Positions 26,501 to 48,588 of a stretch of 64,000 nucleotides of DNA are shown in pieces. Within the stretch, counting starts at the first letter, position 1; each line of letters opens with the position of its first letter. Source of the stretch: Macrostomum lignano (taxonomy: Eukaryota). Location: assembly GCA_002269645.1 (NCBI GenBank), contig NIVC01000111.1:248001-312000 (forward strand), given 5' to 3'. The notes under the pieces are model-generated. The model saw only the letters and a program-made list of their open reading frames with translations, did not search any database and was not told the origin of the DNA. The position numbers and the translations under genes were made by a program.

Positions 26501-26922
26501 TATCTTGCATGCATGGCCTCCTATTTGTAAGTCAAAATAAAGACTTTTGCAAAAATACTTTAAGTACAACTGTTAAATTTGCAAAAAAATTAAACACGAA
26601 TGCAAAAACTGTCCGCGATTGCGTACTTCAAGTAGAATAATTTGGCGAAATGCACGAGTTTCTGTCCAACTCGAATACAAATTGCACTGTATCAAGCTGA
26701 CAGCGATCGACATGGCCAACCCATGCAATTACCTGCGCAAAAGTACACACAGGGAAACTCCTAGCTCGATCGTAGATATTGCTGCGACAGTTTTAAGAGC
26801 ACGCAGTTCTACGCTCGTAGTCTAGCACCTTTGCATAAGCGGGAAATGCTTTCGTCTAAAGGAGCAGCGGTATCACGTCGGCACAGGCGGCCCTATACAT
26901 TTATGCACATTCACGCAACAAT

Positions 26923-27513
26923 AAGAAGCCCATTTGAATGGGAAACTTAGTACACGTAGTTGTCAGCGTCTTTTGATCTTGTACCGCGGCACCGTGGAGT
27001 TTCAGGATGAGCTATAGCTGATGTATCGCGGTGCCGCGGAGTTTCAGGATGAACTATAGCTGATGTATCGCGGTGCCGCGGAGTTTCAGGATGAGCTATA
27101 GCTGATGTATCGCGGTGCCGCGGAGTTTCAGGATGAGCTATAGCTGATGTATCGCGGTGCCGCGGAGTTTCAGGATGAGCTATAGCTGATGTATCGCGGT
27201 GCCGCGGAGTTTCAGGATGAGCTATAGCTGATGTATCGCGGTGCCGCGGAGTTTCAGGATGAGCTATAGCTGATGTATCGCGGTGCCGCGGAGTTTCAGG
27301 ATGAGCTATAGCTGATGTATCGCGGTGCCGCGGAGTTTCAGGATGAGCTATAGCTGATGTATCGCGGTGCCGCGGAGTTTCAGGATGAGCTAAAGCTGAT
27401 GTATCGGGGTGAAGCGATATATATGTACATGTAGATCAGATGACGCTGCGCTGACAACTACATGCAATTAGCTAGTCTACGTGTACTAAGTTTCCTATTC
27501 AAATGGGCTTCTT
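26923..27513. mobile_element. TIR-bounded non-autonomous element carrying a 42-bp tandem array
   Basis: aagaagcccatttgaat(g/a)ggaaacttagtacacgtag at the left end is inverted at the right end (~35 bp, 1 mismatch); no TSD recognised. Confidence 0.7.
26996..27415. repeat. Near-perfect 42-bp array ggagtttcaggatgagctatagctgatgtatcgcggtgccgc, ~10 copies
   Basis: Period 42 measured from 26996 to 27038. Confidence 0.95.
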
Positions 27514-27947
27514 GTTACACGCATGGCTGCGCAATTTATAAAATAGAAATCATAAACCTTTTTGGAATTACGGACTGCATCGATCGCTATTAAGTAACAT
27601 TAATCGAACCCGTGCTCAAATCTGCATGCAGTGTGAGCACTGGACTTTTGCGAAAATTGTACAGCCGATTCAGGCATTATCAAACAATTAAAACAGTTAG
27701 TCAATGATCGGGAATGAGCGCGCATGGGAGAGAAAATGATATTAAAATTTTAGAAGGGGCCTGGAACTAGCTGTCGAATGTGCATTACATGTGTGTACAT
27801 GCATGCATTGCATTACATTGTATGCATTAAATGAATGTATATTACATGTACCGTGTATGCACAAATATAAAAAAAATAATATTACAGCGGCTCAGCCATG
27901 ATTTTTGAAGTGTTAAATTATTGCAAAAAATTCATGCAAAAAAGCGT

Positions 27948-28587
27948 CAGGGGCGTCGCCGTGGATTTTATGGTGGGGGCCGGGGACGAAACACTTATAC
28001 ATGTAGTACATGTACATGACTAATTCCTACATGTACATTATTTTTTTCAGAATCGGTGTTGTCAGCACTCATTTTAGCGCCGCAGGCAGGGGCGTCACCA
28101 ACTGGGGGGACAGGGCCGGACATGTCCCCCCAGTAAAAGATTTGGGCATTTGCCATATGCTTTGTCCCCCTCAACCATACCAATTTTGTGACCTATTATG
28201 AAAATTTTGCTGCATTGTACTAAAATTAGTGCCCGCGGCGCCAAAATGAGTGCCAGCGGCGCCAAAATGACTGCCTGCGGCGCTAAAAGTGCTGACAACA
28301 CCGATTCTGAAAATAATGTACATGTAGGAATTTAGTCCTGTACATGTTACATGTAGAAGTGTTGGCTTTGTCCCCCCTCCCACCATAAAATCCACGGCGA
28401 TGCCCCTGGCCGCAGGCACTCATTTTGGCGCCGCGAGAACTAATTTTAGCACCATGCAGCAAAATTTCCATAACGGCCGTCACAAAGGTAATGGTGGGGG
28501 GGGACAAAGCATTGTGGCATGTCCCCCCAAATATTTTACTGGGGGGGACATGTCCCCCCTGTCCCCCCGTTGGTGCAGACGCCCCTG
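27948..28587. mobile_element. hAT-like MITE (CAGGGG termini) interrupted by an inverted copy of the same family
   Basis: Termini caggggcgtc...gacgcccctg. Segments 27948-28086 and 28409-28587 are the reverse complement of the inner element. Outer TSD not found. Confidence 0.75.
28087..28408. mobile_element. hAT-like MITE, 322 bp, nested
   Basis: Termini caggggcgtc...gatgcccctg; exact 8-bp TSD gccgcagg at 28079-28086 and 28409-28416. Confidence 0.85.
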
Positions 28588-29840
28588 ACGACGCTTTAAC
28601 GTTAGTGAAAGCGTAAAAATGCATGCAAAAATATTAAAGAATTTCACTTTTAAGGCACCTAGCTTGCGCTGCGCCACTACTGTCATTAGATAAGCCTATT
28701 AATTGCAATAAATGGACTTAAAGTGTACAATCGCAATTAGGTCTACCGTAAACTAAGGCCTTTGCTTTAGAGAGCTATTTTTTTGAGCAACACCTCTTGG
28801 ATATCACCTGAGGCAGTGGGTGTACTACTAAACGTTACGGATATCTAAACGAAACTTGATGTCGAGACGAAGAAAAAAGATTCTAATTTGATACGAAACT
28901 TTCTAAGAAACCCATACGGCATATATACGCACTTATATCCCGGCTTAGCCGGCTGGAGCCCCAGGGCGGCAGGTCCCAGGGTTCAGCTCTATATTAGGCC
29001 TCCATCATATATATTAGTTAAGCCGTGTGTCATCTTTTGACGCAAGAAAGCGAAGTTTTTCCCCGCGCAGACGGTGGATCATTAGAAATTAGGAAATAGG
29101 CCATGGTGCTACATTATATTAGGCTTAGGCCTAATATTACATCATTTATAATCGCTCTATTATTGTACTACTGTAAAAATATTGATTTGAATAGGAATAT
29201 CATATAAATATAGGCCTATGACATATAGGGGGAGTATATTTATGACTATGGCTCTAGTCTAGAGTCTAGATAGATATTGGTAGATATCCTGCACCTGCTG
29301 TACAGCTGTACCAATGCCAATGCCATTCCAGTGATTCCATATGGATTTGTATCAGTCCAGAAATTTAGGTAGATAGCCTGCTATCCTCTCTGCACCAGAA
29401 TAAGTAGTGGGCCTTGTCAAATCCATTTCTGTAAAGGAAAATTCCCCAGAAAACAGCACTAGGGCCTAGCTATCTTGACTGTTTAAGACTTTTAAGTTAG
29501 GCCCTATGCTATTAGGGACAATATTAGAACCAATTAGGGCCTTTCAAAATCTCCCAAGACTAAGTCAGGCCCTAACTTAGTTAAGGACTTAGTCTTGGGA
29601 GATTTTGAAATTTGGGCCTTTTTTAGCAATGCTTTATTCCATTTGATAATTTTTTTACTAGAATAAAGAAACACCTTTTGTTGTTTTAAAAACTGTCAAG
29701 TAGGCCTACTAATTTATTATTCTTAACTTCTATTGCATCTTCCTTCAGACTAGGCCTATGGGTAATAAATAGCTACAAAACTTTTTATATAGGCCTAACT
29801 TGAGGCCTATCTTAAATGTTAACTTTTTTATAGGTCTAAT

Positions 29841-30626
29841 GGCTCATTCCATATAAGCATGGTCGTAACATGACAGGTTATTTTTACTTATAAAATGAAA
29901 TCTAATAATAGAATATACTAAACCAATATTTTAAATGAAAGATTATTTTGTCTAGAATATATTTATAGAGTTTCATTATAGATATCATCATTAGTATAGA
30001 TGCTATTAAACCTTAAATGACACTTATGGTCGTAACGACAGGATTTTTGACATATAGAAACTGAAAGGTAAAAGTCTTATAACATTTTTCATTTTTGATA
30101 TTTTGCAATACATTTTTAAAATTTGACTAAGAACATCTTTAGAAATCATACTCTTTTATTAGAATATATAAACTCAAAAGGCAACTAAGATACAAAAGAA
30201 AAGGCAGCCTTATAGTCGTAACATTATGGTCGTAACATATTTTTTCTGTCAATTCAGTAACTTTGAGGTACTAATACATTAAAAATATAATAGATTATTT
30301 GGTCACCAATGCTTTTATCTGATGATGCAAGTACTATACTTTTATCTATAGTTTGTTTCAACCTTCAAAAGCTTTCTATTTGTTTTTAAAAGGTACAAAA
30401 TCTTAATGATGTCTTTTGCTTCGAAAAATGTCCAAATTTTTACAAAAATGACTTTTTGCCAATTGATAACATACTAATCCAACATTTTACCATTCCTTTA
30501 TTCTTAGATTGTATATATTGCACAATATAAACATTTGGTAAAAAAATAGGCTAATTAGGCAATGGCAAGCAAAAATATTGACTTTTTTCTATTTTCCAAA
30601 TATGTCCATCTTATATGGAATGAGCC
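29841..30626. mobile_element. AT-rich non-autonomous DNA element with 17-bp TIR ggctcattccatataag and internal atggtcgtaac repeats
   Basis: TIR at 29841 and inverted (cttatatggaatgagcc) ending at 30626; flanks are not an exact TSD. Confidence 0.6.
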
Positions 30627-31460
30627 TATTTTGCCTATTGAGTACTATCTGTACTATTGAGTAGGCTTACTATACTATAGTACTGTTATTTTATTGGCAT
30701 TATGCCACAGTAATCGATGCTAGGCCAAAAATGAGTTAAATATTTGGTCGCTTGTTTGGGGTCAACATATAAATAGGGGCAGATGGTTTTGCACATAGAC
30801 AAATAATTCACATATGCATACAATATCTCCCCTTTTAAGCAAATCAATTTTACAGTTCTTTCTTCTTTATCTCCCCTTTTAAGCTTTAACTGGTTCATCC
30901 AACTTCTTGTAATGCAACTTGGATGCCGGGACTCCCTTGTTGACCATTGACTTTGCCTTGGCTATACGGTCTTTGGCTTGTCTAGGGCCTCTTGTGCTTC
31001 ACCTTGCTTCTGAGATACACCAGTAGTAGAGAGCTGTTCTTGTAGTAGACATTGGTGGATGTACACGCAATTGGGACAGAAAATTTGGTCGCTTACTAAC
31101 TTGACCATGTAATCCTGCTTGCAACACCATGTTATGTTCTTGGCATTAAGCCACAGTAATTGGTGCTAGGCTGAAAATGAGTTAATATATTTGGTTGCTT
31201 GTTTGGGGTCAACATATAAATGGGGGCAGATGGTTTTGCACATAGACAAATAATTCGCATATGCATACAACAAGTACTATTGAGTACTATAGGCAAATAG
31301 GCTTAGGCCTAATAATTTTTGATTGAAAAATTGTTTATTAAGCCTATTAACATTTTAATATTTTTAAAAACCAATTTCAATGCTTAGGCCTAAGCTAGGC
31401 TTAGGGTCTAATATTTTAGCTTCTTTATCTCTTATTTATCTATTGATAAAATAAATCTAA

Positions 31461-32372
31461 TACATGAAGTACATATAAATGTAGATATACATGTAGGACT
31501 ATATATATGATTCAATAGATTCCTAAGTGCTACACTTTGAATTGTATAATAATGCATTGTTAATTTTATTATATCTATATGTAAAGTATAAAATTATTAC
31601 AACAATATACAAAGCCATTTAAAAAAGACTACTTTTGTTCAAACAAGTAAATCTAATATAACCAGAATAGCCAAAACCTTTGCAATAAAACCTAAAAAAG
31701 TTAGCCTTAAGCTTGAAATGCATAAGACTAAAAGGCCTATAAAAAGGTTTTTTGCTAATTTTGCTATAGTAAAGCCAATATCTTAATTTTTGTTTTTTTA
31801 ATGGATATACTTATGCATATTAATATGTTGTTTTATAACTAGAGGCAACAAAGCTAACCTATTATAAAAAAATAGGAACAATAAAAAATATAAAAAATTT
31901 AAATATTTTTAATATAAAAAATTGATTAAGCCTTGAGAATAGAAAAAAATAGTTTATTACATTGTTCTTGCATCTTGAAAAAAAAATGTTTTTTTCCTTT
32001 AGCCTTAATAGTAGGCCTATTTAGTATATAGTGATTTTGTTTGCCACCTTTCAAGCAAATGTAAGAACTTTTACGAGTAGACAAATATGATATAGGTCCT
32101 AGTTATATGGTTTTGCACCCACAGGATAGGCTTAAAATTAAATAAAAGGTTCAAAAGTTCAATTAATATAATATATTAATTTACTTGTTTGAACAAAAGT
32201 AGTATTTTTTAAATGGCTTTGTATATTGTTGTAATAATTTTATACTTTATACATAGATATAATAAAATTAACAATGCATTAGTATACAAAATCAAAGTGT
32301 AGCACTTAGGAATCTATTGAATTATATATATAGCCCTACATGTATATCTACATTTATATGTACTTCATTGTA
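31461..32372. mobile_element. Foldback element with ~190-bp inverted arms
   Basis: 31461-31652 is the near reverse complement of 32179-32372. Confidence 0.7.
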
Positions 32373-33954
32373 CATCTTAACATCTTGGAACATCTGAAGG
32401 TAAGCAAAAATTATTAAGAAATCTTCTTACATTGAGACTAGAACCCTTTTCTAAGTTCATTAATCTTGTATTGGAGTTTTTTATAGCAGAAGAAATGACC
32501 CAAATGAGTAGAAAAAATGACTCTATGAATATTAGTAGACAAAAAAGTAGCAAACAAAAATTAGTATTACAGAATTCTATTTTGGATAATAAACTATGCT
32601 TTTTTCACTAATTGTCATTGTAATATTATTTTAACTTTCACATTGATCTTTGTTAGACCTATAATTTAAAAAAATGTTTAATTTATAGTTTTTAAACAGT
32701 AAAAACCTATTATACTAGAGTTGTAAATATCTACATTTTAGAAAAAAAATTATAAACTAAAAAGTTCAAACTACAAGTGTTATATATTCAGATTTATAAG
32801 TTTTTTAGTGTATCTACTAGCTATTATTGCTCATGCAATATTTTGTTATATTCTATAGCCATATTTATGGTTGAACAATGAACATTAGAGTTTTTAGTAA
32901 ATTATCCTTTTCCACTTTTAATATAAAAATTTATGCAATTATTACCATAATATGCTACTAGTGGTAGTACATGAATAAAAATTATTCTTTTTTTGTAATT
33001 ATAAATTAGATTGCAACTAAGGTATATGCACAGAATTTAAAGTTCAAGAGATAGGAGAAAAGCAGCATAGGGTCACTGCACATCTTGTGTGAGCATGAAT
33101 CAGGCAGGGCCAGCTTTGAGTATTTGCCTGCCTGTCATGAGCTCAGGGGTCAGTGCAATAGGCAAGAGATGAAAATTCTCAACATTTTTGCTGCTAGAGA
33201 CCAAAATAGAAAGCCATTATAGGCTTCTAAAATTTAATGAAACTGCTGACAGCCGACTTATATTCCTATATAATTCTAACTAAGCAATAATCTTTTGGAT
33301 TTATTTATTTGTGCAACAAAACCAAAAAAGTTATCGGGGAAATTTCCTCCTTGGCATATGGGAGTTTAAACAGACTTTTTAGAAACGCTGATTTAGATTT
33401 TTTAACAGAGATTTCTCTGATCAAAAGCAAGGAAGAAGAGTTTGGGATGTGGGATTAGAAATTGCTGGATAGGACAACCTCGTGTCAGGAGGACTCAGGG
33501 CGGCTGCCACGGCTGGCTGAAGGATCCCGCCCGCTCGCTGTGCTGAATTTGATTAAAATTTTGGTTAGTTTGGCCTCCCTGTTCCCTTTCCCCCCTTAGA
33601 GCCCGAGTTTTCCACTCGGCTAAGCTCGGATTGCCTTGTTTGTTCGCGCCCTGGTCTCTATCTCCCTTGTCTCCCCGTCTGCATTTTTCTCTGGGGCGGG
33701 GAAGCTCCCAGATTTTAGGGTCACGCCTGAGTTTGCTTTGGAGTCTTCGTTCTCTCTTGGCTGTGCTTTTAATACCCGACACTGTTGCTTCTTGTTCAGG
33801 CTTTCCTTTTTCTGTCCACTTTTATGTAATCCCGGTAATTTTGATAGGGGAATGATAAATTAAGTAAAACTTTCATTAGATACGGAAATAAGTGAACAAT
33901 AATCTACGACTCTGCGAGCTACGAGTGAAGAGTGATAGGTGTGAGAATAGAAGA

Positions 33955-34895
33955 TCAGGGAAGAGAATGAAGAGAGTGAGGGATAAGACAAGAGAGTGAG
34001 GGATCAGCGAAGAGAGTGAGGGATCAGGGAAGAGAGTGAGGGATAAGGGAAGAGAGTGGGGGATAAGGGAAGAGAGTGAGGGATAAGGGAAGAGAGTGGG
34101 GGATAAGGGAAGAGAGTGAGGGATAAGGGAAGAGAGTGAGGGATCAGGGAAGAGAGTGAGGGATAAGGGAAGAGAGTGGGGGATAAGGGAAGAGAGTGGG
34201 GGATAAGGGAAGAGAGTGAGGGATAAGGGAAGAGAGTGAGGGATCAGGGAAGAGAGTGGGGGATAAGGGAAGAGAGTGGGGGATAAGGGAAGAGAGTGAG
34301 GGATAAGGGAAGAGAGTGAGGGATAAGAGAAGAGAGTGGGGGATAAGGGAAGAGAGTGAGGGATAAGGGAAGAGAGTGGGGGATAAGGGAAGAGAGTGAG
34401 GGATCAGGGAAGAGAGTGAGGGATCAGGGAAGAGAGTGAGGGATCAGGGAAGAGAGTGAGGGATCAGGGAAGAGAGTGAGGGATCAGGGAAGAGAGTAAG
34501 GGATCAGGGAAGAGAGTGAGGGATAAGAGAAGAGAGTGGGGGATAAGGGAAGAGAGTGAGGGATAAGGGAAGAGAGTGAGGGATCAGGGAAGAGAGGAGG
34601 GATAAGGGAAGAGAGTGGGGGATAAGGGAAGAGAGTGAGGGATAAGGGAAGAGAGTGGGGATAAGGAAGAGAGTGAGAGATAAGGGAAGAGAGTGGGGGA
34701 TAAGGGAAGAGAGTGAGGGATAAGGGAAGAGAGTGGGGGATAAGGGAAGAGAGTGAGGGATAAGGGAAGAGAGTGGGGGATAAGGGAAGAGAGTGAGGGA
34801 TAAGGGAAGAGAGTGGGGGATAAGGGAAGAGAGTGAGGGATCAGGGAAGAGAGTGAGGGATCAGGGAAGAGAGAGATGGGATCAGGGAAGATGAA
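33955..34895. repeat. 20-bp purine-strand minisatellite gggat(a/c)agggaagagagtg(a/g)
   Basis: Read directly. Confidence 0.95.
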
Positions 34896-34920
34896 GGTAA
34901 GGGAAAAGAGATGATGAGAG

Positions 34921-35206
34921 AATTGCCGAGGTTTGCCCGCAATGCTTTTTTGCTGCAGCGCACTTTGCCACGCGGCAGATTATTTCTGCATTGCCCCCAT
35001 CCAATGCTTAGTAATTCTTAATAAAAGATTTACCCGATAAAAATGTTTTGATGGTAACTGCATATTAAATGCATATTCTTCTTGTATTTTTTTCATTTCC
35101 ATATACATAGAGGGGCGCATCTGTGAGCTATTCATTTTTGAACTACATCTGTAGCTCAATGCGCTGCAGGAAAAAAAGCATTGCTAGCAAACCTCGGCGG
35201 GCAATT
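34921..35206. mobile_element. MITE-like element with imperfect ~40-bp inverted termini
   Basis: aattgccgaggtttgcccgcaatgcttttttgctgcagcgc versus gcgctgcaggaaaaaaagcattgctagcaaacctcggcgggcaatt. Confidence 0.55.
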
Positions 35207-35795
35207 CGTCTGCGGGCAAATCTCGTGTCCCCAATAATTAGGGCTGTATGTGTGAGCTTTCGTTGCTGATTAGAGTTCTAAATATAAATTCTGATTACGT
35301 GATTAAATCCTTCATCTTGATTCAGCTTTGAAGTTTTCCGAGTTTTTTTTCAGTTTATTGCTATTTAAATCATCGCGACGCGCAAATAGGATTGCAGAAG
35401 ATGGAGTGATATAATCTGTCTCTTAGACACGGTCTTATTGCCGAGCTTTATTTTTTCTAGGCTATATTTAAATCAGAATTATGCCAACGAAATCTGATCT
35501 GAAGATTTCCAGCAACGTTTTTATTTTCATCAGTGCTTTCATAAGTGATGATTCTACGAGCGTACTGAATGTAGTGTTTAACTGGACAAGGCTTAGTGTG
35601 CTTGCTAGAATATATTTAGTTATTAATAAAGCGTGTACAAAGTTTTAGATGCGTGATGATAGTTTTCACAGAAACATTTTAAAGTGCAAATATTCACGGT
35701 TCAAGAAAAAATCGCCAGGAGGTTTCAGTGTCATGTGACTAATGTGAAAATTGTCAAATAGTCACGGTTATATAAGGTCATAGATATCGCAGGGT

Positions 35796-38249
35796 TCACA
35801 GAGTCTCCGTGTGCAGTTCATAGCAGTCGGTCAACTCCTCGTTGGCATCCGCTGCCGCTGCCATCCCCTCGTCGTAGTCGCCTGTTGCAACCGTTGCGGA
35901 ACCTCTGGCTGAGCCGAAGCAGCCATTGACATAAGTTCGGAAGGACCTGTCAGTGATGTAGAATACCCAGAAGTTGATAGACGCGCTAAGCGGTACCAGC
36001 ACGTACTCTGTGGCGTACTGAGCCACCGTCAGCTGCCCGATGCGGCTCCAGTGGGTTCGAAATGCCGGATCTACTTCGTCGTACAGGCCGTTGGACAGTT
36101 TAACTATGAGACGGTCCGCGTGAGCCGTCATGAACATTGTGTAGATCACAGGCGCTGGAGCTGTAAGCACCAGGTAGGCAAGCGCCAGACCCAACTGACC
36201 AATTGCTCTGCTTAGCTGGCCATCCTGCTGATACTGTTGCTGTTGCATTGGCGATGCAGGTACCGCTGGTTCCTCCATCTGCTGCTGCATTCCGTGCTCT
36301 TCGTTGCGCAAACTCTGATAAGCGCCTTTCTTGAATAGCAACCAACAGGTTGCCAGGCTGAGAGCGCAGACCAAACTGTAAGGCAGGAGGCTTCTGGCCA
36401 GAGCGTTTAACACCGGCTTTACCAGCGTTACAAATGCTAAATTGGTGCGAAAGTTTTGCAGCCTGACGTACTGGACGCACTGGCGGCCAACTGTTGACTT
36501 AGCCGGTGCAGCGATTTCGTCTCCGATGATCAGCATGCAGTTAAATATGCAGGCAAAGCAGAATGCGCACAATGACAGAATGGCCAGTTGCCTGAATGGC
36601 AGCTCTTTGCGTGCGCCTGTTGATGAAGTCTGTCTGAAGAGCGAGTGGACGGCTAGGAAACGTTCTATGCTGAGGATTACCACCGTGAATGCGCTAGATT
36701 CAACTGTTAGGTTTAGTAAATAGACTTGAAATTTGCACCAGATATCTGTTGCTCCATTAGGCTTCAATTCTTGATCGTGCTCCATGTACTTGTCGGTGAA
36801 TAAAACCAAGTTCGATGCGATAAGTATGCTAGTGTCAAAGCAGGCCAGCAATACTATTAAAAAATTGCGACCAACCTTTCGTACCTGCGTATGTCTGGCG
36901 TAATACAATATGATGACGAAGTTGAGGCTGGAGCCAACCACGGCCAGCATTGGGAGGACAAACTTAATGATTGATTTCGCCTGCAGGATGGCTGGTATGC
37001 GGTTTGAGTACTGCTGAAAGGCCGAGTACTCGCGAGATATCTTCCTCCGCAGCTGATGCCAGAGGTCGGCCAGAATGCTGTAGCATCTGCCGCCAGTGAC
37101 CGTCGCCTGATTGCAAGTAGCCAACAGCTGCCTTAGCTGCGTCATCTCGCCCGTCTCCAGGTGCCTAGCTAAGTCTTTGTCAATGTCTTCTTGCAATACG
37201 CGGCAATAGAATGCTAGTAGACTCGCCCGCTGCTCATTAGTGAGATCGGGTTCGGAAATCTTGTTATCAGTGCAGCATTGAGACCAGTGCTCCTGATAGT
37301 GCTGCATAAAAAGCAGCACGTGGGCCAGCACTTGTCGCCCTAGGCTGGCCACGGCATGGCTAATGTTGTTAGCTCGACTGGTCAGCTGCTCTGTCGACAT
37401 CGGGCCTGTGCGATTCTGACAGCCTGCTGGCGAGTCTGCTATCGATTGGGAATAGTTAGCTATCAGCGCTGGCATTGTGTCCCAGACTAGGCCAGACAGG
37501 AGGTTGTATTCGCTTGTTATCGACACTAGTTGTATGACTGCGTCGTCTGCAATTGAAGTGTTTGTTGAGTCCGATATGTTTCTTGACAATGGTTCGTCTT
37601 CGTAAAGCATCGCGTCCACTTGACGACTGGTTGCATTGATTATTTGGACTGTCGAATCCAACAGCTGACGGGTGACGTTGGCCAGAGCTGAGGGACAGGC
37701 GGTATAGCCGCTGTAGGCGAGTCGAAGCAGCTCGTCATATTGTTTACGATCGGCTGATAAATAGCCCGGCACCTCAGCGCCTGCCGGATTGTGCAGCTGG
37801 CCAGACCGACTCGACATAAAGTCTAGAAAGGTGACAGCGTCCGACCAGTGCCTGGGATTGCGCTTGTACCACTCGGCTTGAAGCTCCTTGTCTCCATTCC
37901 AGCTGAGGTGTCTATAGACTCGGTGGTACCTTTCTAGGCTGCGCAGAAGCTCAGTGGACTCTTCTAGCGCCTGGTCCCAGTTCCACCGGTTGTAGTAGGT
38001 GGACGAGCCCACGCTGTACGTGCCGCCGAGTCTGGTTACTAAGCGCCAACTGGTGCCAAAGAAGTGCAAAAATCCTGTGTACCTCACAGCTAAGGAGTTC
38101 CATTCGTGTCGCCTGTAGTGAAAATCTTGCGCTACTACCTGGTAGATGTCTTGCAGGATTCGCTCTTGTTTGGCCGTGAAATTTCCTTGCGCCGATTTTG
38201 CTAGGAGCAGTATGCTCAGGTAGGGCAGGAGAACACTTGGTAGCTTCAT
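35796..38249 (-). CDS. Single-exon class A (rhodopsin-family) orphan GPCR, ~817 aa, signal peptide and ~420-aa N-terminal ectodomain
   Basis: First ATG at 38249 (MKLPSVLLPYLSILLLAKSAQG). Seven hydrophobic segments with GSSLN (TM1), LACFD (TM2), WCK...SIERFLAV (TM3), ECL2 Cys, LLPY (TM5), LTAP (TM6), SINFWVFYITDRSFR (TM7/H8). NFxxF/Y-type TM7 resembles invertebrate peptide-receptor-like groups. Confidence 0.9.
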   Translation of the reverse strand: MKLPSVLLPYLSILLLAKSAQGNFTAKQERILQDIYQVVAQDFHYRRHEWNSLAVRYTGFLHFFGTSWRLVTRLGGTYSVGSSTYYNRWNWDQALEESTELLRSLERYHRVYRHLSWNGDKELQAEWYKRNPRHWSDAVTFLDFMSSRSGQLHNPAGAEVPGYLSADRKQYDELLRLAYSGYTACPSALANVTRQLLDSTVQIINATSRQVDAMLYEDEPLSRNISDSTNTSIADDAVIQLVSITSEYNLLSGLVWDTMPALIANYSQSIADSPAGCQNRTGPMSTEQLTSRANNISHAVASLGRQVLAHVLLFMQHYQEHWSQCCTDNKISEPDLTNEQRASLLAFYCRVLQEDIDKDLARHLETGEMTQLRQLLATCNQATVTGGRCYSILADLWHQLRRKISREYSAFQQYSNRIPAILQAKSIIKFVLPMLAVVGSSLNFVIILYYARHTQVRKVGRNFLIVLLACFDTSILIASNLVLFTDKYMEHDQELKPNGATDIWCKFQVYLLNLTVESSAFTVVILSIERFLAVHSLFRQTSSTGARKELPFRQLAILSLCAFCFACIFNCMLIIGDEIAAPAKSTVGRQCVQYVRLQNFRTNLAFVTLVKPVLNALARSLLPYSLVCALSLATCWLLFKKGAYQSLRNEEHGMQQQMEEPAVPASPMQQQQYQQDGQLSRAIGQLGLALAYLVLTAPAPVIYTMFMTAHADRLIVKLSNGLYDEVDPAFRTHWSRIGQLTVAQYATEYVLVPLSASINFWVFYITDRSFRTYVNGCFGSARGSATVATGDYDEGMAAAADANEELTDCYELHTETL

Positions 38250-39529
38250 CGTTTGCAAGCAATCGATTGGGTATCGCTGGCTAACAGTGGAGCTTTGACT
38301 TCGATACAGTTATCCAGTGCGTCACAAATATCTTTTTCGTTCCTCTTATCTCTTATCCATTTGCCTATCCGCCACTGTTTTTCTTTTTTGGCTTTCTCTG
38401 CTGCCCCCGTGAATCGCCCAATCGGAGAGCTCCGTGGCCAGGAGGGCCCGTCGCGCTCTTGCAAAAAAGGTTGAGCGAGGCTTCTAGGGGCAGCAGATAT
38501 AAAGGTTGAGATAGAGGAGGCACTGGAAACTGATAAGTTAGGCGTCTCAATTCGACCCGGGCTAGCTCCCTTCCCCCCGAGGGAAAGAGACTGGGAGCAG
38601 AGAGGACTGAGTAGGCGATGATGAGCCTGGCTGCCTGCCTCATCTTCTCATCCTCCGGGGCTCCTCTTAACCGTGAATAATAAGCCGAGCTTATCCGCCC
38701 AAGTTGGCCTCCCTATCCCGCTCTGATTGACGTCTCTTCCACCCACTCGTCAAGGACTTCAGGTCTGCCAGTCCTCCAGGGGCAGCTGAGGGCAAGAAGT
38801 CACAGTTTGAGCTGCATTGTTGAGAGAGGAGCTTCATTGATTAATATGCATTGTTATAAATAGTGTGCATATATAGAGCTGATCCTTCACTCGTGTCATT
38901 CACCTCGGTGAAACGCTGAACACTGTCATGCATTCTAGTAATAATCCTGCTAATTAGCAATCTCTGTTGCCAGGTGCAGATAATTGGGCTCCCGGAGTTA
39001 ACGTTAATCTGCTTTCTCTCTCTTCATCTCTTCTCTAATCTCCTTGTCTTTTTTACTTTGATGACTCAAATGAATCTAACGATCGGGTCTTTTCTTCATT
39101 GCATGCATTTCTACAAAGGCTTCTGTTGATGAATTTTAAAAGCGGTTTTTAGACTTAAGGATGAAAAGTTGAGAACGGTGGTATGGTCGAGGACTTAATT
39201 AGGATAATTCTGAAGTGAATGTCTTTGAATCTTAAAACCGCAACTATCCATTTTTAATGGGACGTGGTACGTGGTACGTGGGATCCGTTCCACTGTTTAA
39301 CAGCTACAGGTTGACATTTTTACCTGGTGTACATCAATGCCACTAACTCTTCCCCAAAAACCTTATTCATTTTTTCCAGATCTGTTTCTGCATTCTTCTG
39401 TCTGTAAAGCATTGCGACATAAAGCCACATTGTGTTTTTTGAGATACCTTTGCCGTGCTGGGCATTTAGGTCGGCCAAGTTACAGCGGCCCAACCCTCAG
39501 GTTGAGGCCAACAGCAGAGCAGCCAACCG

Positions 39530-42500
39530 ATGGAGCGCGCTCTCAGCCTCAACCTGTTAAACGCGGCCGGTGTGGTGTACTTTTTCGGCGTCACTGCTGC
39601 CTGCTTCTTCACCGCAGATCTGCTGGTGCTGCCGAGACTGTCAGCGGATGGGGATCTGGCGAGTCCGGGCTGTGTGCGGCTCCTGCTGTACTGTGTCATT
39701 GCCGAGGTAAGAATATCTTATGTAGACACCTGAGCTTCCACTCTTTCGGAACAGTGTAGTAATAAGACCATGAATAATGAATAATTGCTCTGAAATGATT
39801 TTGTTTCTAAGAAACGGCCTGATTACTTTTCTCGAAGTAACTATAAAAAGTTTCTAAAAGTCGATCTTATTCGCTTCAAAAAATCTCTGATTCGATTCTA
39901 AGAATTTCCCGATCTGATTCGTTTCGATTTCTTAGAATCACCTGGATTCGTTCACGAGAATCTGTTAGATTCGTTTCGTAGTAACAGTTCAACTTGATTT
40001 AAGAAAATCATCAAATAATTTTAAGCAAAAACCTGAAGTACACTCACTGAGAATAGTGATTTTTGCTTCTAAGAATCGTCTGGTTAGTTTCCAAGAATCG
40101 TCAGGTTAGTTTCTAGGAATTATGTGGTTAGTTTCTAGGAATTATGTGGTTAGTTTCTAGGAATTATGTGGTTAATTTCTAGGAATTATGTGGTTAGTTT
40201 CTAGGAATTATGTGGTTAGTTTCTAGGAATTATGTGGTTAGTTTCTAGGAATTGTGTGGTTAGTTTCTAGGAATTATGTGGTTAGTTTCTAGGAATTATG
40301 TGGTTAGTTTCTAGGAATTATGTGGTTAGTTTCTAGGAATTATGTGGTTAGTTTCTAGGAATTTGGTTAGTTTCTAGGAATTGTGGTTAGTTTCTAAGAA
40401 TAGCAAGGTTTGTTTCAAAGAATCGTCCGGTTAGTTTCCAAGAATCGTCTCGTTCGTTTTCAAGAATCATCAGGTTAGTTTCCAAGAATCGTCTGGTTAG
40501 TTTCCAAGAATCGTCTGGTTAGTTTCCAAGAATCGTCAGGTTAGTTTTTAAGAATCGTCTGGTTAGTTTCCAAGAATCGTCTGGTTAGTTTTTAAGAATC
40601 ATCAGGTTAGTTTTTAGGAATCATCAGGTTAGTTTCCAAGATTCGTCTGGTTAGTTTCCAAGAATCGTCTGGTTAGTTTCCAAGAATCGTCTGGTTAGTT
40701 TCCAAGAATCGTCTGGTTAGTTTCCAAGAATCGTCTGGTTAGTTTCCAAGAATCGTCTGGTTAGTTTCCAAGAATCGTCTGGTTAGTTTCCAAGAATCGT
40801 CTGGTTAGTTTCCAAGAATCGTCAGGTTAGTTTTTAAGAATCATCAGGTTAGTTTTTAAGAATCATCAGGTTAGTTTGTAAGAATCATCAGGTTAGTTTC
40901 CAAGAATCGTCTGGTTAGTTTCCAAGAATCGTCTGGTTAGTTTCCAAGAATCGTCTGGTTAGTTTCCAAGAATCGTCTGGTTAGTTTCCAAGAATCGTCT
41001 GGTTAGTTTCCAAGAATCGTCAGGTTAGTTTTTAAGAATCATCAGGTTAGTTTTTAAGAATCATCAGGTTAGTTTTTAAGAATCATCAGGTTAGTTTCCA
41101 AGAATCGTCTGGTTAGTTTCCAAGAATCGTCTGGTTAGTTTCCAAGAATCGTCTGGTTAGTTTCCAAGAATCGTCTGGTTAGTTTCCAAGAATCGTCTGG
41201 TTAGTTTCCAAGAATCGTCTGGTTAGTTTCCAAGAATCGTCAGGTTAGTTTTTAAGAATCATCAGGTTAGTTTTTTAAGAATCATCAGGTTAGTTTTTAA
41301 GAATCATCAGGTTAGTTTCCAAGAATCGTCTGGTTAGTTTCCAAGAATCGTCTGGTTAGTTTCCAAGAATCGTCAGGTTAGTTTTTAAGAATCGTCTGGT
41401 TAGTTTCCAAGAATCGTCTGGTTAGTTTTTAAGAATCATCAGGTTAGTTTTTAGGAATCATCAGGTTAGTTTCCAAGATTCGTCTGGTTAGTTTCCAAGA
41501 ATCGTCTGGTTAGTTTCCAAGAATCGTCTGGTTAGTTTCCAAGAATCGTCTGGTTAGTTTCCAAGAATCGTCTGGTTAGTTTCCAAGAATCGTCTGGTTA
41601 GTTTCCAAGAATCGTCTGGTTAGTTTCCAAGAATCGTCTGGTTAGTTTCCAAGAATCGTCAGGTTAGTTTTTAAGAATCATCAGGTTAGTTTTTAAGAAT
41701 CATCAGGTTAGTTTTTAAGAATCATCAGGTTAGTTTCCAAGAATCGTCTGGTTAGTTTCCAAGAATCGTCTGGTTAGTTTCCAAGAATCGTCTGGTTAGT
41801 TTCCAAGAATCGTCTGGTTAGTTTCCAAGAATCGTCAGGTTAGTTTTTAAGAATCATCAGGTTAGTTTTTAAGAATCATCAGGTTAGTTTTTAAGAATCA
41901 TCAGGTTAGTTTTTAAGAATCATCAGGTTAGTTTTTAAGAATCATTAGGTTAGTTTCCAAGAAAAGTTCCAGGCATCATAACCGGCAAAACCGCCTACCC
42001 GCAGGTTCTGGCCAACTATTTCGCTGTGCTGCGCACATCCCGCCGCAACAGCGCCACCAGCACGGTCTTCGCTCGCACTCCGGCGTCAACTAACGGGTCC
42101 TCAACCGTTCTGGGCTACTCCGGATTGGCCAACGCGGAGTTCTGCCTGCACTGCCGGGCCAAGAGGCCACCCGGCGCGCACCACTGCCCACTCTGCCGCG
42201 TGTGCGTCCTCGGCCACGACCACCACTGCTTCTTCACCGCCTGCTGCATCGGCCGGTGCAACCGCCGGCATTTCCTCCCCCTGATGCTCCATGTGTTGCT
42301 GGGCAGCAGCCTGTGCGTCTGTCTGCAGTACCTGTACCTGGCCAGGGTGTTCCAGCCAGCCCTGTCCGTGAATATCTGGATGTACTTTTACCCCATCACT
42401 GTCGTTCTTTACGCTACCGGCAACGCCGACGCTTCAGTGGTTGCCATGGTGACGCTGTTATTCGCTACGCTATTCGGTGTTTTGGCGAGCTTTTATTTTT

Positions 42501-42706
42501 TCTTCTTCCAACTGCTGCTGGTCTGCCGCGGCCAGACGCCGCACGAGTTCGCCGAGGTGTCGGCGCCTGCGCCGAAGATGTCGCTGGGCAGCTGCAGGCG
42601 AAACTGCGCCAGGGTGTTCGGCCGCTGCGGCCTACTGCAGTTTCTGTGGCCCTGCCCGGCCCTGCCAATGCCCGAGGACTTCGCCAGGCCGGCCAAGACT
42701 GCCTGA
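39530..42706 (+). CDS. DHHC palmitoyltransferase (ZDHHC22/24-like). Exons 39530-39706 and 42005-42706
   Basis: Phase-0 junction VIAE|VLANYF (gtaag...cccgcag). Cys-rich domain FCLHCRAKRPPGAHHCPLCRVCVLGHDHHCFFTACCIGRCNRRHF with flanking TM segments. Confidence 0.9.
40070..41965. repeat. Intronic 22-bp minisatellite with three unit variants (ggttagtttctaggaattatgt, ggttagtttccaagaatcgtct, ggttagtttttaagaatcatca)
   Basis: Read directly; variants occur in blocks. Confidence 0.95.
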
Positions 42707-42829
42707 AGAGTTTCTTTGATTTCGATACATATCGGCACAGTTGCTTCAGTTGAGTCACCAGCTGACTGACTGGGTTTTCATTCTCTGATTCTCCTCGTTC
42801 CCGGAATTCTCCTGTCGTTTCGTTACATT

Positions 42830-43400
42830 GTATCTAAATTCCCCGCTTTCATTTCCCTAGCCTAATTACCCTCTATCATTCCACTAGCCTGATACCCCTC
42901 TCTCTCATTCCCCTACCCTAATTCCCCTCCCTCATTCTCCCAGCCTGATTCCCCTCTGTCATTCCCCTAGCCTGAGTTCCCTCTCTCATTCCCCTAGCCT
43001 GATTTCCCTCTCTCATTCCCCTAGCCTGATTTCCCTCTCTCATTCCCCTAGCCTGAGCTCCCTCTCTCATTCCCCTAGCCTGAGCTCCCTCTCTCATTCC
43101 CCTAGCCTGAGCTCCCTCTCTCATTCCCCTAGCCTGAGCTCCCTCTCTCATTCCCCTAGCCTGAGCTCCCTCTCTCATTCCCCTAGCCTGAGCTCCCTCT
43201 CTCATTCCCCTAGCCTGATTTCCCTCTCTCATTCCCCTAGCCTGATTTCCCTCTCTCATTCCCCTAGCCTGATTTCCCTCTCTCATTCCCCTAGCCTGAG
43301 TTCCCTCTCTCATTCCCCTAGCCTGAGTTCCCTCTCTTATTCCCCTACCCTATTTACCCCTATCATTAATTCCCCTCTCTCATTCACCTTACTGAATTAT
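42830..43400. repeat. 27-bp pyrimidine-rich minisatellite attcccctagcctgagctccctctctc
   Basis: Read directly; MREGAQARG 9-aa periodicity. Confidence 0.9.
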
Positions 43401-43944
43401 TTCTTCATCCGCCCTCTTTAATTCCCCTCTCGTAATCTCTCTCGCTATTTCCTAATTCTCTCCTAATTCCCTATTTACCATACTTCTAACTTCCTTCAAT
43501 ACGCAACGATAGCCGGACATTATCAATCGGAAGTCATGCACACTGCCTAGTCAATAACTCAGTCAGCTATGCTCGCATGTGATTTATTAGGTCTACCTGT
43601 CAATCTATTTTATACAAGCAGGGCCTTCGTAATTTCTTTCTCATCACTAAATCGAATGAGCTCAGTGCACGAACAGATATTGCCACTCAGTAATTGTTCG
43701 AGACACACATTGTCTTATTTGTATGCGCCAGACATTCTGTACTTTTCCAGCTTATCTAACACGTTTTCAGCTTCAAATTCTGTTGTGCTCAGAGATTTTT
43801 TGCCTGTCTGCGGTATCTTTCGAATGCCCTCTCCTATCGAAATTTTAATTGACATAAGTTTATATAAGTGCTGCGCTTAGATCCATGCGTCTCAACTCAC
43901 TTCGAAAGCGTTTTTAAGTAAGTTCTGCAGCAACTTTGTGTGAA

Positions 43945-44615
43945 CACAATGATGCGGTCCAGTTCAGTTGATAATGGCTGCAATGATGCGGTCCAGTTCA
44001 ACTGATAATGGCTGCAATGATGCGGTCCAGTTCGATTGATAATGGCTGCAATGATGCGGTCCAGTTCAACTGATAATGGCTGCAATGATGCGGTCCAGTT
44101 CGATTGATAATGGCTGCAATGATGCGGTCCAGTTCAGTTGATAATGGCTGCAATGATGCGGTCCAGTTCAACTGATGATGGCTGCAATGATGCGGTCCAG
44201 TTCAATTGATAATGGCTGCAATGATGCGGTCCAGTTCAATTGATAATGGCTGCATTGATGCGGTCCAGTTCGATTGATGATGGCTGCAATGATGCGGTCC
44301 AGTTCGATTGATAATGGCTGCAATGATGCAGTCCAGTTCGATTGATAATGGCTGCAATGATGCGGTCCAGTTCAGTTGATAATGGCTGCAATGATGCGGT
44401 CCAGTTCGATTGATAATGGCTGCAATGATGCGGTCCATTTCAATTGATGATCGCTGCAATGATGCGGTCCAGTTCGATTGATAATGGCTGCAATGATGCG
44501 GTCCAGTTCGATTGATAATGGCTGCAATGATGCGGTCCAGTTCAGTTGATAATGGCTGCAATGATGCGGTCCAGTTCAGTTGATAATGGCTGCAATGATG
44601 CGGTCCAGTTCAACT
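43945..44615. repeat. 34-bp minisatellite gctgcaatgatgcggtccagttcgattgataatg
   Basis: Read directly. Confidence 0.95.
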
Positions 44616-45159
44616 GCTGTTACTTTTCTAGACAAATAATTTGTTACAACATGTACTTTTGTAATGTATTTTTTGTTTAAATTTCAGGCTCCGGCAAATC
44701 TTGGCCATGATAGCGCACCATTCCAGAGCTAGCTGAACTGTGAATGCATTAGAAAGTACAGTAAAATATGTTTATTAGAATTATTTATTTAAATTGTTTT
44801 GCTTGTCCTATCTTATTTATTGGTAAGCGTCAATTTACTTGTCATTCAAATGTACTAGTTTTGGTGTACTTTATTATCTATCTATTATTAGATATTATTG
44901 CTCACCGTTTCTTTCTTACTGCTCACGATATTTTTGATTGCAAAGAATTTAGAAACCCCATTATTATTGTATAGCTCTGTTCACCTTACACGTGTTCTTG
45001 TGTTTTATGATGATGATTATAAATTTAATGCAATAAAAAGTATACAAATGTTTGCTTGCCTAATTTGGTTATAATCACAGTGTCTATTTCGGTGAAGTCT
45101 GTCTCGGGTGTCACAACAAAACATGTTTTCGTTTAAAATTTTGCCTTTGATATTGTCTG

Positions 45160-46085
45160 ATCTTTTGAATAAATTGGGGGCAATGATGCGGTCCAGTTTC
45201 CGTCAATACAGACACAATGATGCGGTCCAGTTTCGGTTAATACAGACACAATGATGCCGTCCAGTTTCCGTCAATACAGACACAATGATGCGGTCCAGTT
45301 TCGGTTAATACAGACACAATGATGCGGTCCAGTTTCCGTCAATACAGACACAATGATGCGGTCCAGTTTTGGTCAATACAGACACAATGATGCGGTCCAG
45401 TTTCCGTCAATACAGACACAATGATGCGGTCCAGTTTTGGTCAATACAGACACAATGATGCGGTCCAGTTTCCGTCAATACAGACACAATGATGCGGTCC
45501 AGTTTCCGTCAATACAGACACAATGATGCGGTCCAGTTTCGGTTAATACAGACACAATGATGCGGTCCAGTTTCGGTTAATATAGACACAATGATGCGGT
45601 CCAGTTTTGGTCAATACAGACACAATGATGCGGTCCAGTTTCCGTCAATACAGACACAATGATGCGGTCCAGTTTTGGTCAATACAGACACAATGATGCG
45701 GTCCAGTTTCCGTCAATACAGACACAATGATGCGGTCCAGTTTCCGTTAATATAGACACAATGATGCGGTCCAGTTTCGGTTAATACAGACACAATGATG
45801 CGGTTCAGTTTCCGTTAATACAGACACAATGATGCGGTCCAGTTTCGGTTAATACAGACACAATGATGCGGTCCAGTTTCGGTTAATATAGACACAATGA
45901 TGCGGTCCAGTTTTGGTCAATACAGACACAATGATGCGGTCCAGTTTCCGTTAATATAGACACAATGATGCGGTCCAGTTTCCGTTAATATAGACACAAT
46001 GATGCGGTCCAGTTTCCGTTAATATAGACACAATGATGCGGTCCAGTTTCCGTTAATATAGACACAATGATGCGGTCCAGTTTTA
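45160..46085. repeat. 34-bp minisatellite caatgatgcggtccagtttccgtcaatacagaca
   Basis: Read directly; shares an 18-bp core with the previous array. Confidence 0.95.
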
Positions 46086-47074
46086 GTTTCAATTTTTATG
46101 CAGCTTAAGCAACTCGAGTTCGAGATTAGGCTAATCCTGAGTCGTAGCACGAGTTGGTTTTGTAGGCTCTTTTTCGACTACTAATAAAATGGATGGACTG
46201 GAGTCTCCCTTGGCTCTAATGATGCTCGAGATTCGATATCGAATCCAAACGTAATTAAATAAAGCTTTCGAGGTTCTCTATTAGTGTGGCAATGTGAGAG
46301 CCTGTGGAGAGCTGGCATAATGTAGAGTGCGGGCCCTTCAATCATTGCTGCATTCAGGCATTCGATTGCTTTTTCATACAAGAAAGCGCGAAACACGTTT
46401 AACTGAGAATTCTAATAATTATATATCGTGTAGAAACCGAACTCTATATTTAATTTTCTTAATCAATTAGATTCCTATACTCTTCACATTAAGAGGTCGC
46501 GGTCAGTTGAAAAAGTAGCAAATTAAAAGTTCTGCCAAGATCAATTCACAGAATTATTTCTGAAACCAATAGTAAGACAAGATTTTGGATTGATGGAGCT
46601 TTTTGGAGAATTAAAGTGATTCTGGATTGCCTGGAAACATTCATTCAGATGCATCCTTTAGATAGCGTTTTTTACTATATCTACATTTAGGTAACAAGGA
46701 CCACTATAATATAACTGGCCCTAAAACTCATAGATCGTCTAATTTTTTTGGAGGCCGATTTCCTAGAAAAAGTTTATACTTTGCCGAGATAGGAAAATCC
46801 TCTTTTCATCATAAAATCAGTGATTGTATTTGATCTGGGGGCAGTGAAGATTACCTGTCTTAACGTGGCTCTTGTGTTTTATATAATAATAAATAATAGT
46901 AACTGATTACATCGGCGCTATGGGCCAGATGTGCAACCGACAGCTCAGCCGCAGCTATCCAGGAAATTGGCCTCCAAAAAAATTTCACCATCTTTGAATT
47001 GCAGTGTCCTGCATGGTACAGCGTACTACAGTGGTCCTTAAAATATGATTCATAAATTCTCAGTACGAGCTAAT

Positions 47075-48588
47075 TCAAACAGATTCATAATTCCCTCGCC
47101 TCTTATTTATGCCATCTTTAACCCAGCCGTAGGAGAACAGAGCCCCATCCCGCACCAGACCCGGAACTGACACCCAGAATTCGGCATTGGGCAGGGCCTG
47201 GGCACCGAAACTTTGTCGCCGAATGGCCACGTTAATTAATATGCCGGCGGCCAGGTAGACTGCAATGAGGCAGAAAAATATGATCAGCAGGATGTCGCCG
47301 CCGCTCATGCCTCCGCCGCCGCCGCCGTCTGGTCCGGGGCCGCCGGTCGCGCAGCAGTGCCGTGACAGCAGGCTCATCTTGTACAGCTCTGTTGAACCGC
47401 TGGATTGACCGTCGTCTAAGGGAGTGAGCAAGTCTTCTCCGCTGCCGGAGGTGTCGCACACCAGCTGCAGGTGGGTCTCTCTGGTCAGCTGGTCGCCCGA
47501 GAGCCCGCTGTACTTTAGCAGCAGGCCGAGGGTTGCGTCAGTTTCGAATGTTGCAGAGGCTTGAGTGCCCATGAGGTATTCCTGAGGAGTGGAGGACGGG
47601 TGAGCAGCGGTTGGGGCTTCCAGTTGTCATAGGATTCTGGGTAGTTTCTGTGGGATTATAGTTGCTATGGGGTTATAGTTGCTATGGGATTCTAGTTGCT
47701 ATGGGGTTCAGATTGCTGTGGTATTCAGATTGCTGTGGGATTCTGCCCGGTTTCTGCGAGATTCTGGTTGCTATGGCATTCTGGTTGCTATGGCATTCTG
47801 GGTCTTTGCTATGGGATTCTGCTCGGTTTCTGAGAGATTCTGGTTGCTATGGCATTCTGGTTGCTATGGCATTCTGGGTGTTTGCTAATGCAGGGTTTCT
47901 GGTTGCTGTGGGATTCTATAGTTGCTATGGGATTCTGCATGGTTGCTATAGGATTCCAATTGGTATGGGATTCTAGTTGCTATAGGATTGTGGTTGCTAT
48001 GGGATTCTAGTTGCCATGGGATTCTGGTTGCTATGGCATTTTAGTTGCCATTGCATTCTACTTGCTATGAAATTCAAGTTCAATGATTGCTACTGGGATT
48101 CTACTGAGAATGGGATTCCGATTGGCATCGTAAATAGTGCTGATTATACTACAGCAGCTTTGCAAAATAAGTTTATTCAATCACTCTTCATCGAAGCACC
48201 TGCCCAATGGCTTTGCTACCTGCAATTTATCGTTGGTCTTCTGGCACACCGCAGCGTCCGAGCTGCCATCGCAGGTGGCCCCATAGCACGGATTATAGTA
48301 ATAGAAAAAGCTCCCGCTTGGGCTGGTCTTATCGTTGAATGCAAAAACTCCGCCAGATTTTGCTAACGGCGAGAGGTCGACTCGACCACCGCTGTCTGTC
48401 TCGCAGCTGCAGGAGCTCAGCTGCTTCACGCAGTTAACGTTGCTAATCAATGCACGGTCTTCCCGGTGCACTGCAGATGAATTGATGGCAGCTTGAGTTT
48501 GTCCGATTGACAAACAGAATAGAGCGAGGCCGAGCCATGCGATGACAGCTGAAGGTGAACGCCCGAATGCTGCTTTCGCTGCTTGCAT
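47075..48588 (-). CDS. Type I membrane protein with one MRH domain (cation-dependent mannose-6-phosphate receptor/ATG27-like). Exons 48220-48588 and 47075-47581
   Basis: Signal peptide; DLSPL, YYYNPC, AVCQ, TRET.LQLVC, LY..SL.SRHCC; TM GDILLIIFFCLIAVYLAAGIL; LPNAEFW...GLVRDG; C-terminal YESV tyrosine sorting motif. Phase-0 junction KLQ|EYL. Confidence 0.85.
47620..48070. repeat. Degenerate intronic repeat built on gttgctatgg(g/c)attct
   Basis: Read directly. Confidence 0.8.

Follow-up and report, generated by a model that had tools for sequence, protein, structure and literature searches.

We report here a predicted receptor gene in a stretch of 64,000 nucleotides from the flatworm Macrostomum lignano (assembly GCA_002269645.1, contig NIVC01000111.1, positions 248,001 to 312,000 of the forward strand); this whole stretch is called the window, and all positions refer to it. 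The gene lies on the minus strand and its product would consist of a signal peptide, a long extracellular region that is rich in N-glycosylation sequons and belongs to no described family, and a seven-transmembrane (7TM) core of the class A (rhodopsin-like) type among G-protein-coupled receptors (GPCRs). A receptor of this kind had been proposed in an initial annotation of the DNA, whose range (36980..38249) corresponds to residues 1-423 of the protein. Taken as a whole, the proposal that a secreted, outward-facing, sequon-rich region is fused to a class A core, and that binding at this ectodomain is relayed to a G protein, seems to us probable, with considerable room for doubt; the architecture by itself appears more certain than the whole statement and the signalling role less certain. 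The parts of the gene are the following:

38184..38249, minus strand: start codon and predicted signal peptide (residues 1-22), with a hydrophobic core and an A-x-G cleavage context
37761..38183, minus strand: N-terminal module of the ectodomain, conserved and rich in aromatic residues (residues 23-163), with the sequon at N23, recognised by its match to a paralogue, P0001
37320..37760, minus strand: putatively glycan-rich middle of the ectodomain (residues 164-310), with 7 of the 8 sequons and with Cys185 and Cys277, from the sequon positions and the open frame
36975..37319, minus strand: membrane-proximal part of the ectodomain (residues 311-425), with Cys325, Cys326, Cys349, Cys379 and Cys389 and RRK at 401-403, from the sequence positions
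35952..36974, minus strand: 7TM domain (residues 426-766) of class A type, its third intracellular loop being Q-rich, from the Pfam 7tm_1 match and hydropathy
35796..35951, minus strand: predicted cytoplasmic tail (residues 767-817) and TGA stop, from the sequence

The open reading frame (ORF) spans 35796..38258 on the minus strand. Its first ATG, at 38249, has an A at -3, the frame runs unbroken from there to the TGA stop codon at 35796-35798, and the product has 817 amino acids (817 codons, 0 stops); this agrees with the single uninterrupted ORF with signal peptide that the initial annotation had described. No segment of the ORF holds an in-frame stop, whereas every one of the other five frames is interrupted 1-28 times per segment; for the segment encoding residues 164-310 the count is 0 in frame and 6-9 in each other frame. 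The G+C content at third codon positions (GC3, 0.55-0.66) exceeds that at second positions (GC2, 0.38-0.53) in all segments, including the middle of the ectodomain, for which no match was found, and AATAAA motifs can be read directly in the sequence about 270-440 nt downstream. The ORF is far beyond what chance would give, and we consider that it represents a real, intronless and so far unannotated gene of M. lignano. An earlier study likewise found that, in planarians and schistosomes, most intronless genes for PROF1 receptors were unannotated (PMC3261222). It should be noted that NIVC01000112.1 is a near-identical duplicate contig of NIVC01000111.1.

Residues 1-22 (MKLPSVLLPYLSILLLAKSAQG) show the n/h/c organisation expected of a signal peptide: the start is basic, LLPYLSILLLA forms the hydrophobic core, and alanine and glycine occupy positions -3 and -1, respectively. 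The extracellular region after it is 403 residues long. Ahead of the first transmembrane helix (TM1) we counted exactly 8 N-X-S/T sequons (N23, N191, N205, N224, N230, N265, N279 and N295), while composition-preserving shuffles of the ectodomain give an expectation of 3.07 +/- 1.57 (P(>=8)=0.005); the following 392 residues (426-817) contain one sequon only, buried within TM3. The cysteines before TM1 are exactly 7 (positions 185, 277, 325, 326, 349, 379 and 389). Direct counting thus returned the 8 sequons and 7 cysteines of the initial annotation, and the aromatic and basic strings quoted in it are present too, namely YYNRWNWD (85-92), WYKRNP (127-132), YRRH (45-48) and RRK (401-403), the last about 23 residues ahead of TM1, which begins at ~426. 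On the basis of the signal peptide, the seven hydropathy peaks, the clustering of sequons ahead of TM1 and the basic residues in the predicted inner loops, the N-terminus of the receptor is predicted to lie outside, the protein being routed to the secretory pathway through a cleavable signal peptide.

Pfam was searched at E<=10 with the ectodomain, both whole and divided into three pieces, and no match to leucine-rich repeat (LRR), LDLa, EGF, Ig, GAIN/GPS or ANF-receptor domains was found; all that appeared was sub-threshold noise, which in the membrane-proximal part consisted of DUF6559 and Wtap (E about 0.05), and sequence and profile searches of the PDB returned noise only. That the N-terminal region is long, is enriched in sequons and contains no domain that can be recognised is therefore borne out by the shuffles, Pfam and PDB, and neither database linked it with confidence to any established family of GPCR ectodomains. 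When residues 1-425 were scanned exhaustively with HMMER against 1.84 billion cluster representatives, exactly one match was obtained, P0001 (E=8.4e-30), which is UniRef A0A1I8FML4, a protein of M. lignano named ATG27. The lineage restriction put forward at the outset agrees with this result, the sole relative among these representatives being a paralogue from the same species. No ectodomain relative from outside M. lignano was present among the 1.84e9 representatives, which perhaps do not cover the transcriptomes of Macrostomum species, and for this reason we do not call the ectodomain species-restricted. Within the window tblastn found no second copy of either the ectodomain or the 7TM part, and JGI metagenome contigs scanned with the conserved peptides YQVVA.. 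and YRRHEW yielded no relative. An internal duplication of the ectodomain was considered and rejected, the segment-versus-segment z-scores being -0.8 to -0.1 and repeats being absent. From these searches the ectodomain appears to belong to no described family.

The alignment with P0001 pairs residues 27-150 of the receptor with residues 215-336 of the paralogue at 48% identity, and this is the only part of the ectodomain with a detectable relative; taken from its mature N-terminus, P0001 aligns to receptor residues 23-163, again at 48% identity. Invariant between the two are the first sequon (N23) and the motifs YQVVA, YRRHEW, GFLxFF, WRLV, YYxRWNW and YHRVYRHL. P0001 is itself a chimeric gene model. 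Its residues 1-183 are ATG27 / cation-dependent mannose-6-phosphate-receptor-like and, from YNYLYNPC onward, this ATG27 part is identical to the NCBI protein P0005; past "FLVR" the model jumps to "TAA-MPGPLLLALLMLPGALG-QPGNGT...", a junction that reads as a 5' leader, a signal peptide (MPGPLLLALLMLPGALG) and a mature N-terminus. The sequon just after this putative signal peptide is the one that aligns to N23 of the receptor, and the model ends at the equivalent of receptor residue ~163, ahead of any 7TM part. An ATG27-like gene is also present in the window:

47075..47572 (last exon) and ~48184..48615, minus strand: ATG27 / cation-dependent mannose-6-phosphate-receptor-like gene, lying in the same orientation as the receptor and upstream of it

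The exon at 47075..47572 is 48% identical to the ATG27 part of P0001. Since both the receptor module and this exon stand at 48% to P0001, the two seem to have accumulated the same divergence after a block duplication, and the simplest reading would be an old duplication of a two-gene block. From then on the N-terminal module would have changed at no higher a rate than a conserved trafficking receptor, and this implies purifying selection on the module. M. lignano possesses at least 3 ATG27-like paralogues, at 42-48% identity: the copy in the window, which was not found among annotated proteins, P0005 (NIVC01003038.1, locus L001) and P0006 (NIVC01000035.1, locus L002). No receptor lies within 10 kb of the paralogue at L002.

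Concerning the core, Pfam 7tm_1 matches residues 443-648 with 38.5 bits when the whole protein is searched and 40.3 bits with the 7TM part alone (the gathering cutoff of PF00001 is 30.5 bits), and no other 7TM family, 7tm_2 included, appeared at E<=10 in the Pfam search of the receptor. Between residues 430 and 767 the hydropathy profile has seven peaks, that of TM7 being the weakest (1.17), and the Q-rich third intracellular loop has about 45 residues (~640-683). Among the class A landmarks, N443 (1.50), D472 (2.50), P623 (5.50), P698 (6.50) and the helix-8 phenylalanine F770 are kept, C505 and C591 correspond to the cysteine pair between TM3 and the second extracellular loop (ECL2) of class A receptors, and the E/DRY position reads E529-R530-F531 (ERF), with R3.50 kept. 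TM6 reads Y692xxxT696xP698 (YLVLTAP, 692-698), in which Thr696 takes the place of W6.48, TM7 reads N759-F-W-V-F763, with Phe760 for P7.50 and Phe763 for Y7.53, and W4.50 is absent. Judged by the 7tm_1 score above the gathering cutoff, with the landmark residues partly kept and partly replaced, the class A assignment of the initial annotation stands, and the receptor is best regarded as a divergent, presumably type-I-oriented seven-helix protein of this class. Its description as "peptide-receptor-like" found no specific support: the best PDB sequence matches, all of them weak (E>=0.017), were to muscarinic, adrenergic, apelin, KISS1, opioid and neurotensin receptors alike, and because such matches mix receptor types the term is not specific. 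Of the flatworm sets tested, the one that lies closest is PROF1 group II, itself made up of orphans.

PROF1 receptors were described in 2011 as intronless flatworm orphans, with the variant TM6 and TM7 motifs of group II listed in Table 3 of that study (PMC3261222), and they have been equated with Srfb (PMC6114109). Hidden Markov models (HMMs) were built from sequences of S. mansoni and S. mediterranea, both PROF1 and others, in the supplement of PMC3261222, group II being represented by 12 sequences. Against the group II HMM the receptor scored 44.4 bits, aligned from TM1 to TM6, whereas 10 of the 11 non-PROF1 S. mansoni class A controls scored from -11 to 26.5 bits, with 14-26 bits for the amine and peptide receptors among the controls; moreover, its four best pairwise matches among 34 flatworm receptors were all PROF1 group II. 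In leave-one-out tests the genuine members of group II reached 269-377 bits, and for this reason the receptor is not counted as a core member. Its 7TM part is best described, as far as such scores can tell, as a distant relative of PROF1 group II. The family placement called for in the initial annotation is thus obtained in part, group II being the nearest of the flatworm sets tested by both HMM and pairwise comparison, while core membership is not supported. Affinity to PROF1 group I was rejected (3.1 bits against the group I HMM), and an hhalign comparison with the group II alignment (96% probability) was dropped as non-discriminating, since all class A controls reached ~95% too.

The likeness to group II extends to several features: the gene is intronless, as are PROF1 genes; [F/V/Y]xxxTxP replaces FxxxWxP in TM6, the receptor having Y where Table 3 has F or V; NFxx[F/Y] replaces NPxxY in TM7, the group II motif being [N/D]F..[Y/F]; and the TM1 spacing P-x5-G-x3-N is common to both. 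On the other hand, the receptor possesses neither the DDFLGRGL signature in the first extracellular loop nor the SKLFSSxKD motif ahead of TM7, it has LACFD (D2.50) and ERF where group II has [L/I][A/T]..[H/N] in TM2 and DR[L/V] in TM3, and in all the PROF1 sequences inspected TM1 lies within about 65 residues of the N-terminus, mostly within ~50 and never near 425. The remaining one of the 11 controls, the unclassified S. mansoni orphan SMPSC74, scores 62 bits against the group II HMM, above some accepted PROF1 group I members; it is not in the PROF1 file of PMC3261222, and the family boundary of 2011 may be too tight.

In the mechanism that we propose, the ectodomain would be a folded, mostly alpha-helical and lineage-restricted module that binds or presents a ligand, and it would gate the 7TM core, passing the binding of a macromolecular or peptide cue from outside on to a heterotrimeric G protein. 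The receptor would most likely act uncleaved, and its class A core retains the residues relevant to coupling (N1.50, D2.50, the TM3-ECL2 cysteines, R3.50, P5.50, P6.50 and the helix-8 Phe).

Several observations weigh against this proposal. The exact product was not found in a collection of 15 billion proteins, and one of 5.8 billion contained neither it nor any relative of the 7TM part; queried with the full protein and, separately, with its 7TM part, the word-indexed search gave no match at E<=0.001, not even the receptor itself, from which it follows that the gene is unannotated. Only one partial paralogue is available for comparison, so that constraint on residues 164-425 is seen only in the open frame and the codon bias; the adjacency of the receptor paralogue to its ATG27 gene rests on the chimeric model P0001, and the 10 kb downstream of the ATG27 copy at L001 (NIVC01003038.1) contain satellite arrays only, with no ectodomain match. 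Since the ectodomain has 7 cysteines, one of them is left without a partner, and the loss of W6.48 and P7.50 could mean that G-protein signalling is atypical or absent. Finally, AlphaFold2, supplied with an alignment of two sequences for the ectodomain, returned a model that is helical throughout but of low confidence (pLDDT, the predicted local distance difference test score, 43.5; pTM, the predicted template-modelling score, 0.34).

The same method also failed on a control, the 7TM part alone, for which pLDDT was 39 and beta strands were placed in TM1-3. Since the 7TM control misfolds too, the prediction is uninformative without homologues, and we attribute the failure of the ectodomain model to missing homologues and not to disorder. 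The initial annotation had suggested comparing an AlphaFold model of the ectodomain with known structures by Foldseek; against the PDB nothing was returned at E<=0.001, and although no known fold was seen, the model is too poor for this to be given weight. The best TM-score, 0.25, was to CorA/Mrs2 and to designed helical bundles, a resemblance dismissed as meaningless because the underlying model is unreliable. Concerning composition, the ectodomain is high in L, A, Q and R and low in P and G, and the alpha-type hydrophobic moment exceeds the beta-type in 77% of its 18-residue windows. Composition, amphipathic periodicity and the conserved aromatic motifs of the N-terminal module weakly suggest that the ectodomain is folded and helical. 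Helicity, which had been part of the original description, is thus hinted at by periodicity and composition, while on the other side stand the low confidence of the structural model and the misfolding of the 7TM part by the same method.

We consider it possible, though on balance doubtful, that the ~400-residue region is a new extracellular fold born in the Macrostomum lineage, a ligand-recognition module carried by at least 2 old paralogous loci and marking a new subfamily related to PROF1 group II. It could be argued instead that the ectodomain belongs to an already known extracellular family from which it has diverged very far, and that it is unrecognised through missing alignment depth and nothing new in kind. 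Flatworm proteins evolve fast and "hidden orthologues" have been discussed for this group (PMC6114109), and since structure prediction failed without homologues even for a part that is certainly 7TM, the comparison of folds says little here. Such divergence would have to be deep enough to escape Pfam and PDB at E<=10, whether the region is searched whole or in pieces, and to yield nothing beyond M. lignano when 1.84e9 representatives are scanned with HMMER; the number and spacing of cysteines are also unlike those of the Frizzled CRD, somatomedin B, LDLa, EGF and hormone-binding domains. We therefore judge this alternative unlikely.

A further alternative would be that the ORF does not encode one protein, the receptor starting at an internal methionine, for example Met368, which would leave an N-terminus of 57 residues, a length typical of class A, and the upstream part being a separate secreted protein or the remnant of an in-frame neighbour. 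The position of TM1 could be read in this way, because in the PROF1 and other flatworm class A sequences inspected TM1 lies within ~100 residues of the N-terminus (~50 in most), against 425 here, and so could the fact that the sole homologue, P0001, covers only the first ~150 residues. However, the ~275 codons between (residues 151-425) are free of stops, where 4-9 stops per segment are found in the other frames and the probability by chance is roughly (61/64)^275, about 2e-6; the GC3 bias runs on through these residues, which hold 7 of the 8 sequons, and the 7TM part has neither a signal peptide nor a start context of its own. An internal start appears quite improbable to us. We are equally little inclined to see in the gene a decaying or non-signalling copy, that is, a recent stop-free pseudogene or a 7TM scaffold serving as adhesion or structural membrane glycoprotein, as the replacement of W6.48 and P7.50, the absence of W4.50, the lack of annotation next to an annotated convertase gene and the failure of the word-indexed search to find a 7TM relative at E<=0.001 might suggest, because a dead gene is unlikely to show 817 open codons with codon bias, the same TM6 and TM7 replacements are normal in the expressed and conserved PROF1 family (PMC3261222), and R3.50, D2.50, N1.50, P5.50, P6.50 and the helix-8 Phe are all kept.

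For the receptor with a sequon-rich ectodomain, the initial annotation had also raised the idea that convertases might shed the ectodomain or expose a tethered ligand. The basic clusters of the ectodomain are RR46-47, KR129-130, RK168-169 and RRK401-403, and none of them is an R-X-K/R-R furin site. The pair RR46-47 is probably structural because it lies inside the invariant YRRHEW motif common to P0001, and KR129-130 (YKRN) is not kept in P0001, which has LHRH there. With no full site, with YRRH inside a conserved motif and with YKRN not conserved, the idea finds no support in these data. The window does contain an intronless gene for a PC2-type proprotein convertase of 634 amino acids (21654..23558, plus strand), with S8 pro-domain, Peptidase_S8 and P-domain; its protein is identical to an annotated NCBI protein of M. 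lignano and is encoded on both NIVC01000111.1 and NIVC01000112.1. This gene is 12 kb from the receptor and has no demonstrated link to it.

Class A receptors usually read their ligands through the helix bundle and short loops, and large ectodomains are few among them and are drawn from a small set of known kinds of domain. In LGR and RXFP receptors, which form part of the class A delta group and have ectodomains of LRR with or without LDLa, as in the receptor described here, a signal peptide and a large ectodomain precede a rhodopsin-type 7TM part; the present ectodomain differs in having no LRR or LDLa signal (Pfam, E<=10), no leucine-rich periodicity and no internal repeats, and the 7TM part has no particular affinity to glycoprotein-hormone receptors among its PDB matches. 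GPR37 and GPR37L1 are vertebrate class A orphans in which a signal peptide is followed by a glycosylated N-terminus of more than 200 residues of no recognised domain type, and the N-terminus of GPR37 is thought to be largely unstructured and to be shed by proteases. Neither of them was among the PDB or Pfam matches of our receptor, whose composition and conserved aromatic motifs point instead to a folded domain and which has no convertase consensus site. Flatworms also hold lineage-specific sets of adhesion / PARF1-type receptors (PMC3261222), with which the receptor shares a long extracellular N-terminus ahead of seven helices. Those receptors are class B2-like and carry GAIN/GPS or somatomedin B domains; ours differs from them in matching 7tm_1 and not 7tm_2, in having no GPS, GAIN, somatomedin B or HRM match, and in its 7 cysteines per 403 ectodomain residues. 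Class A GPCRs with large ectodomains and flatworm-specific orphan rhodopsins are known already, and what would be new here is their combination and the putative undescribed ectodomain family.

If the proposed reading is true, flatworms devised another route for feeding signals into the class A scaffold, and a class A GPCR would have gained a de novo or orphan ectodomain; M. lignano, which is used in the laboratory as a model of regeneration and reproduction, would also gain a tractable orphan. Intronless receptor genes are missed by the public gene sets of this species, as happened earlier for PROF1 in planarians and schistosomes (PMC3261222). The practical weight of the finding is modest, as it concerns one gene and one partial paralogue.

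Other features of the window are reported here as side observations. Between the receptor and the ATG27-like gene, on the opposite strand, lies a DHHC palmitoyltransferase (39530..39706 and 42005..42706, plus strand), for which a two-exon structure with GT/AG borders was reconstructed; its 2.3-kb intron is almost filled by a minisatellite of 86 copies of 22 bp (40067..41963). Exons similar to long-chain acyl-CoA synthetase, with AMP-binding and AMP-binding_C domains, were found at 55445..56296, 57514..58092 and 58341..58814 (plus strand), with minisatellites in the introns between them, and an N-terminal exon of a Vitellogenin_N / large lipid transfer protein at 3357..3857 (minus strand, E=6e-17) is flanked by 45-bp and 24-bp tandem arrays. 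No Rfam family reached its gathering score on either strand of 1..64000. The density of minisatellites is unusual: more than 20 arrays, with periods of 12-68 bp and up to 147 copies, occupy introns and intergenic DNA of the window (for example 8592..12752, 6395..8233, 33969..34891 and 61869..62680), with long spurious ORFs in several frames, and the paralogous locus L001 is likewise rich in minisatellites.

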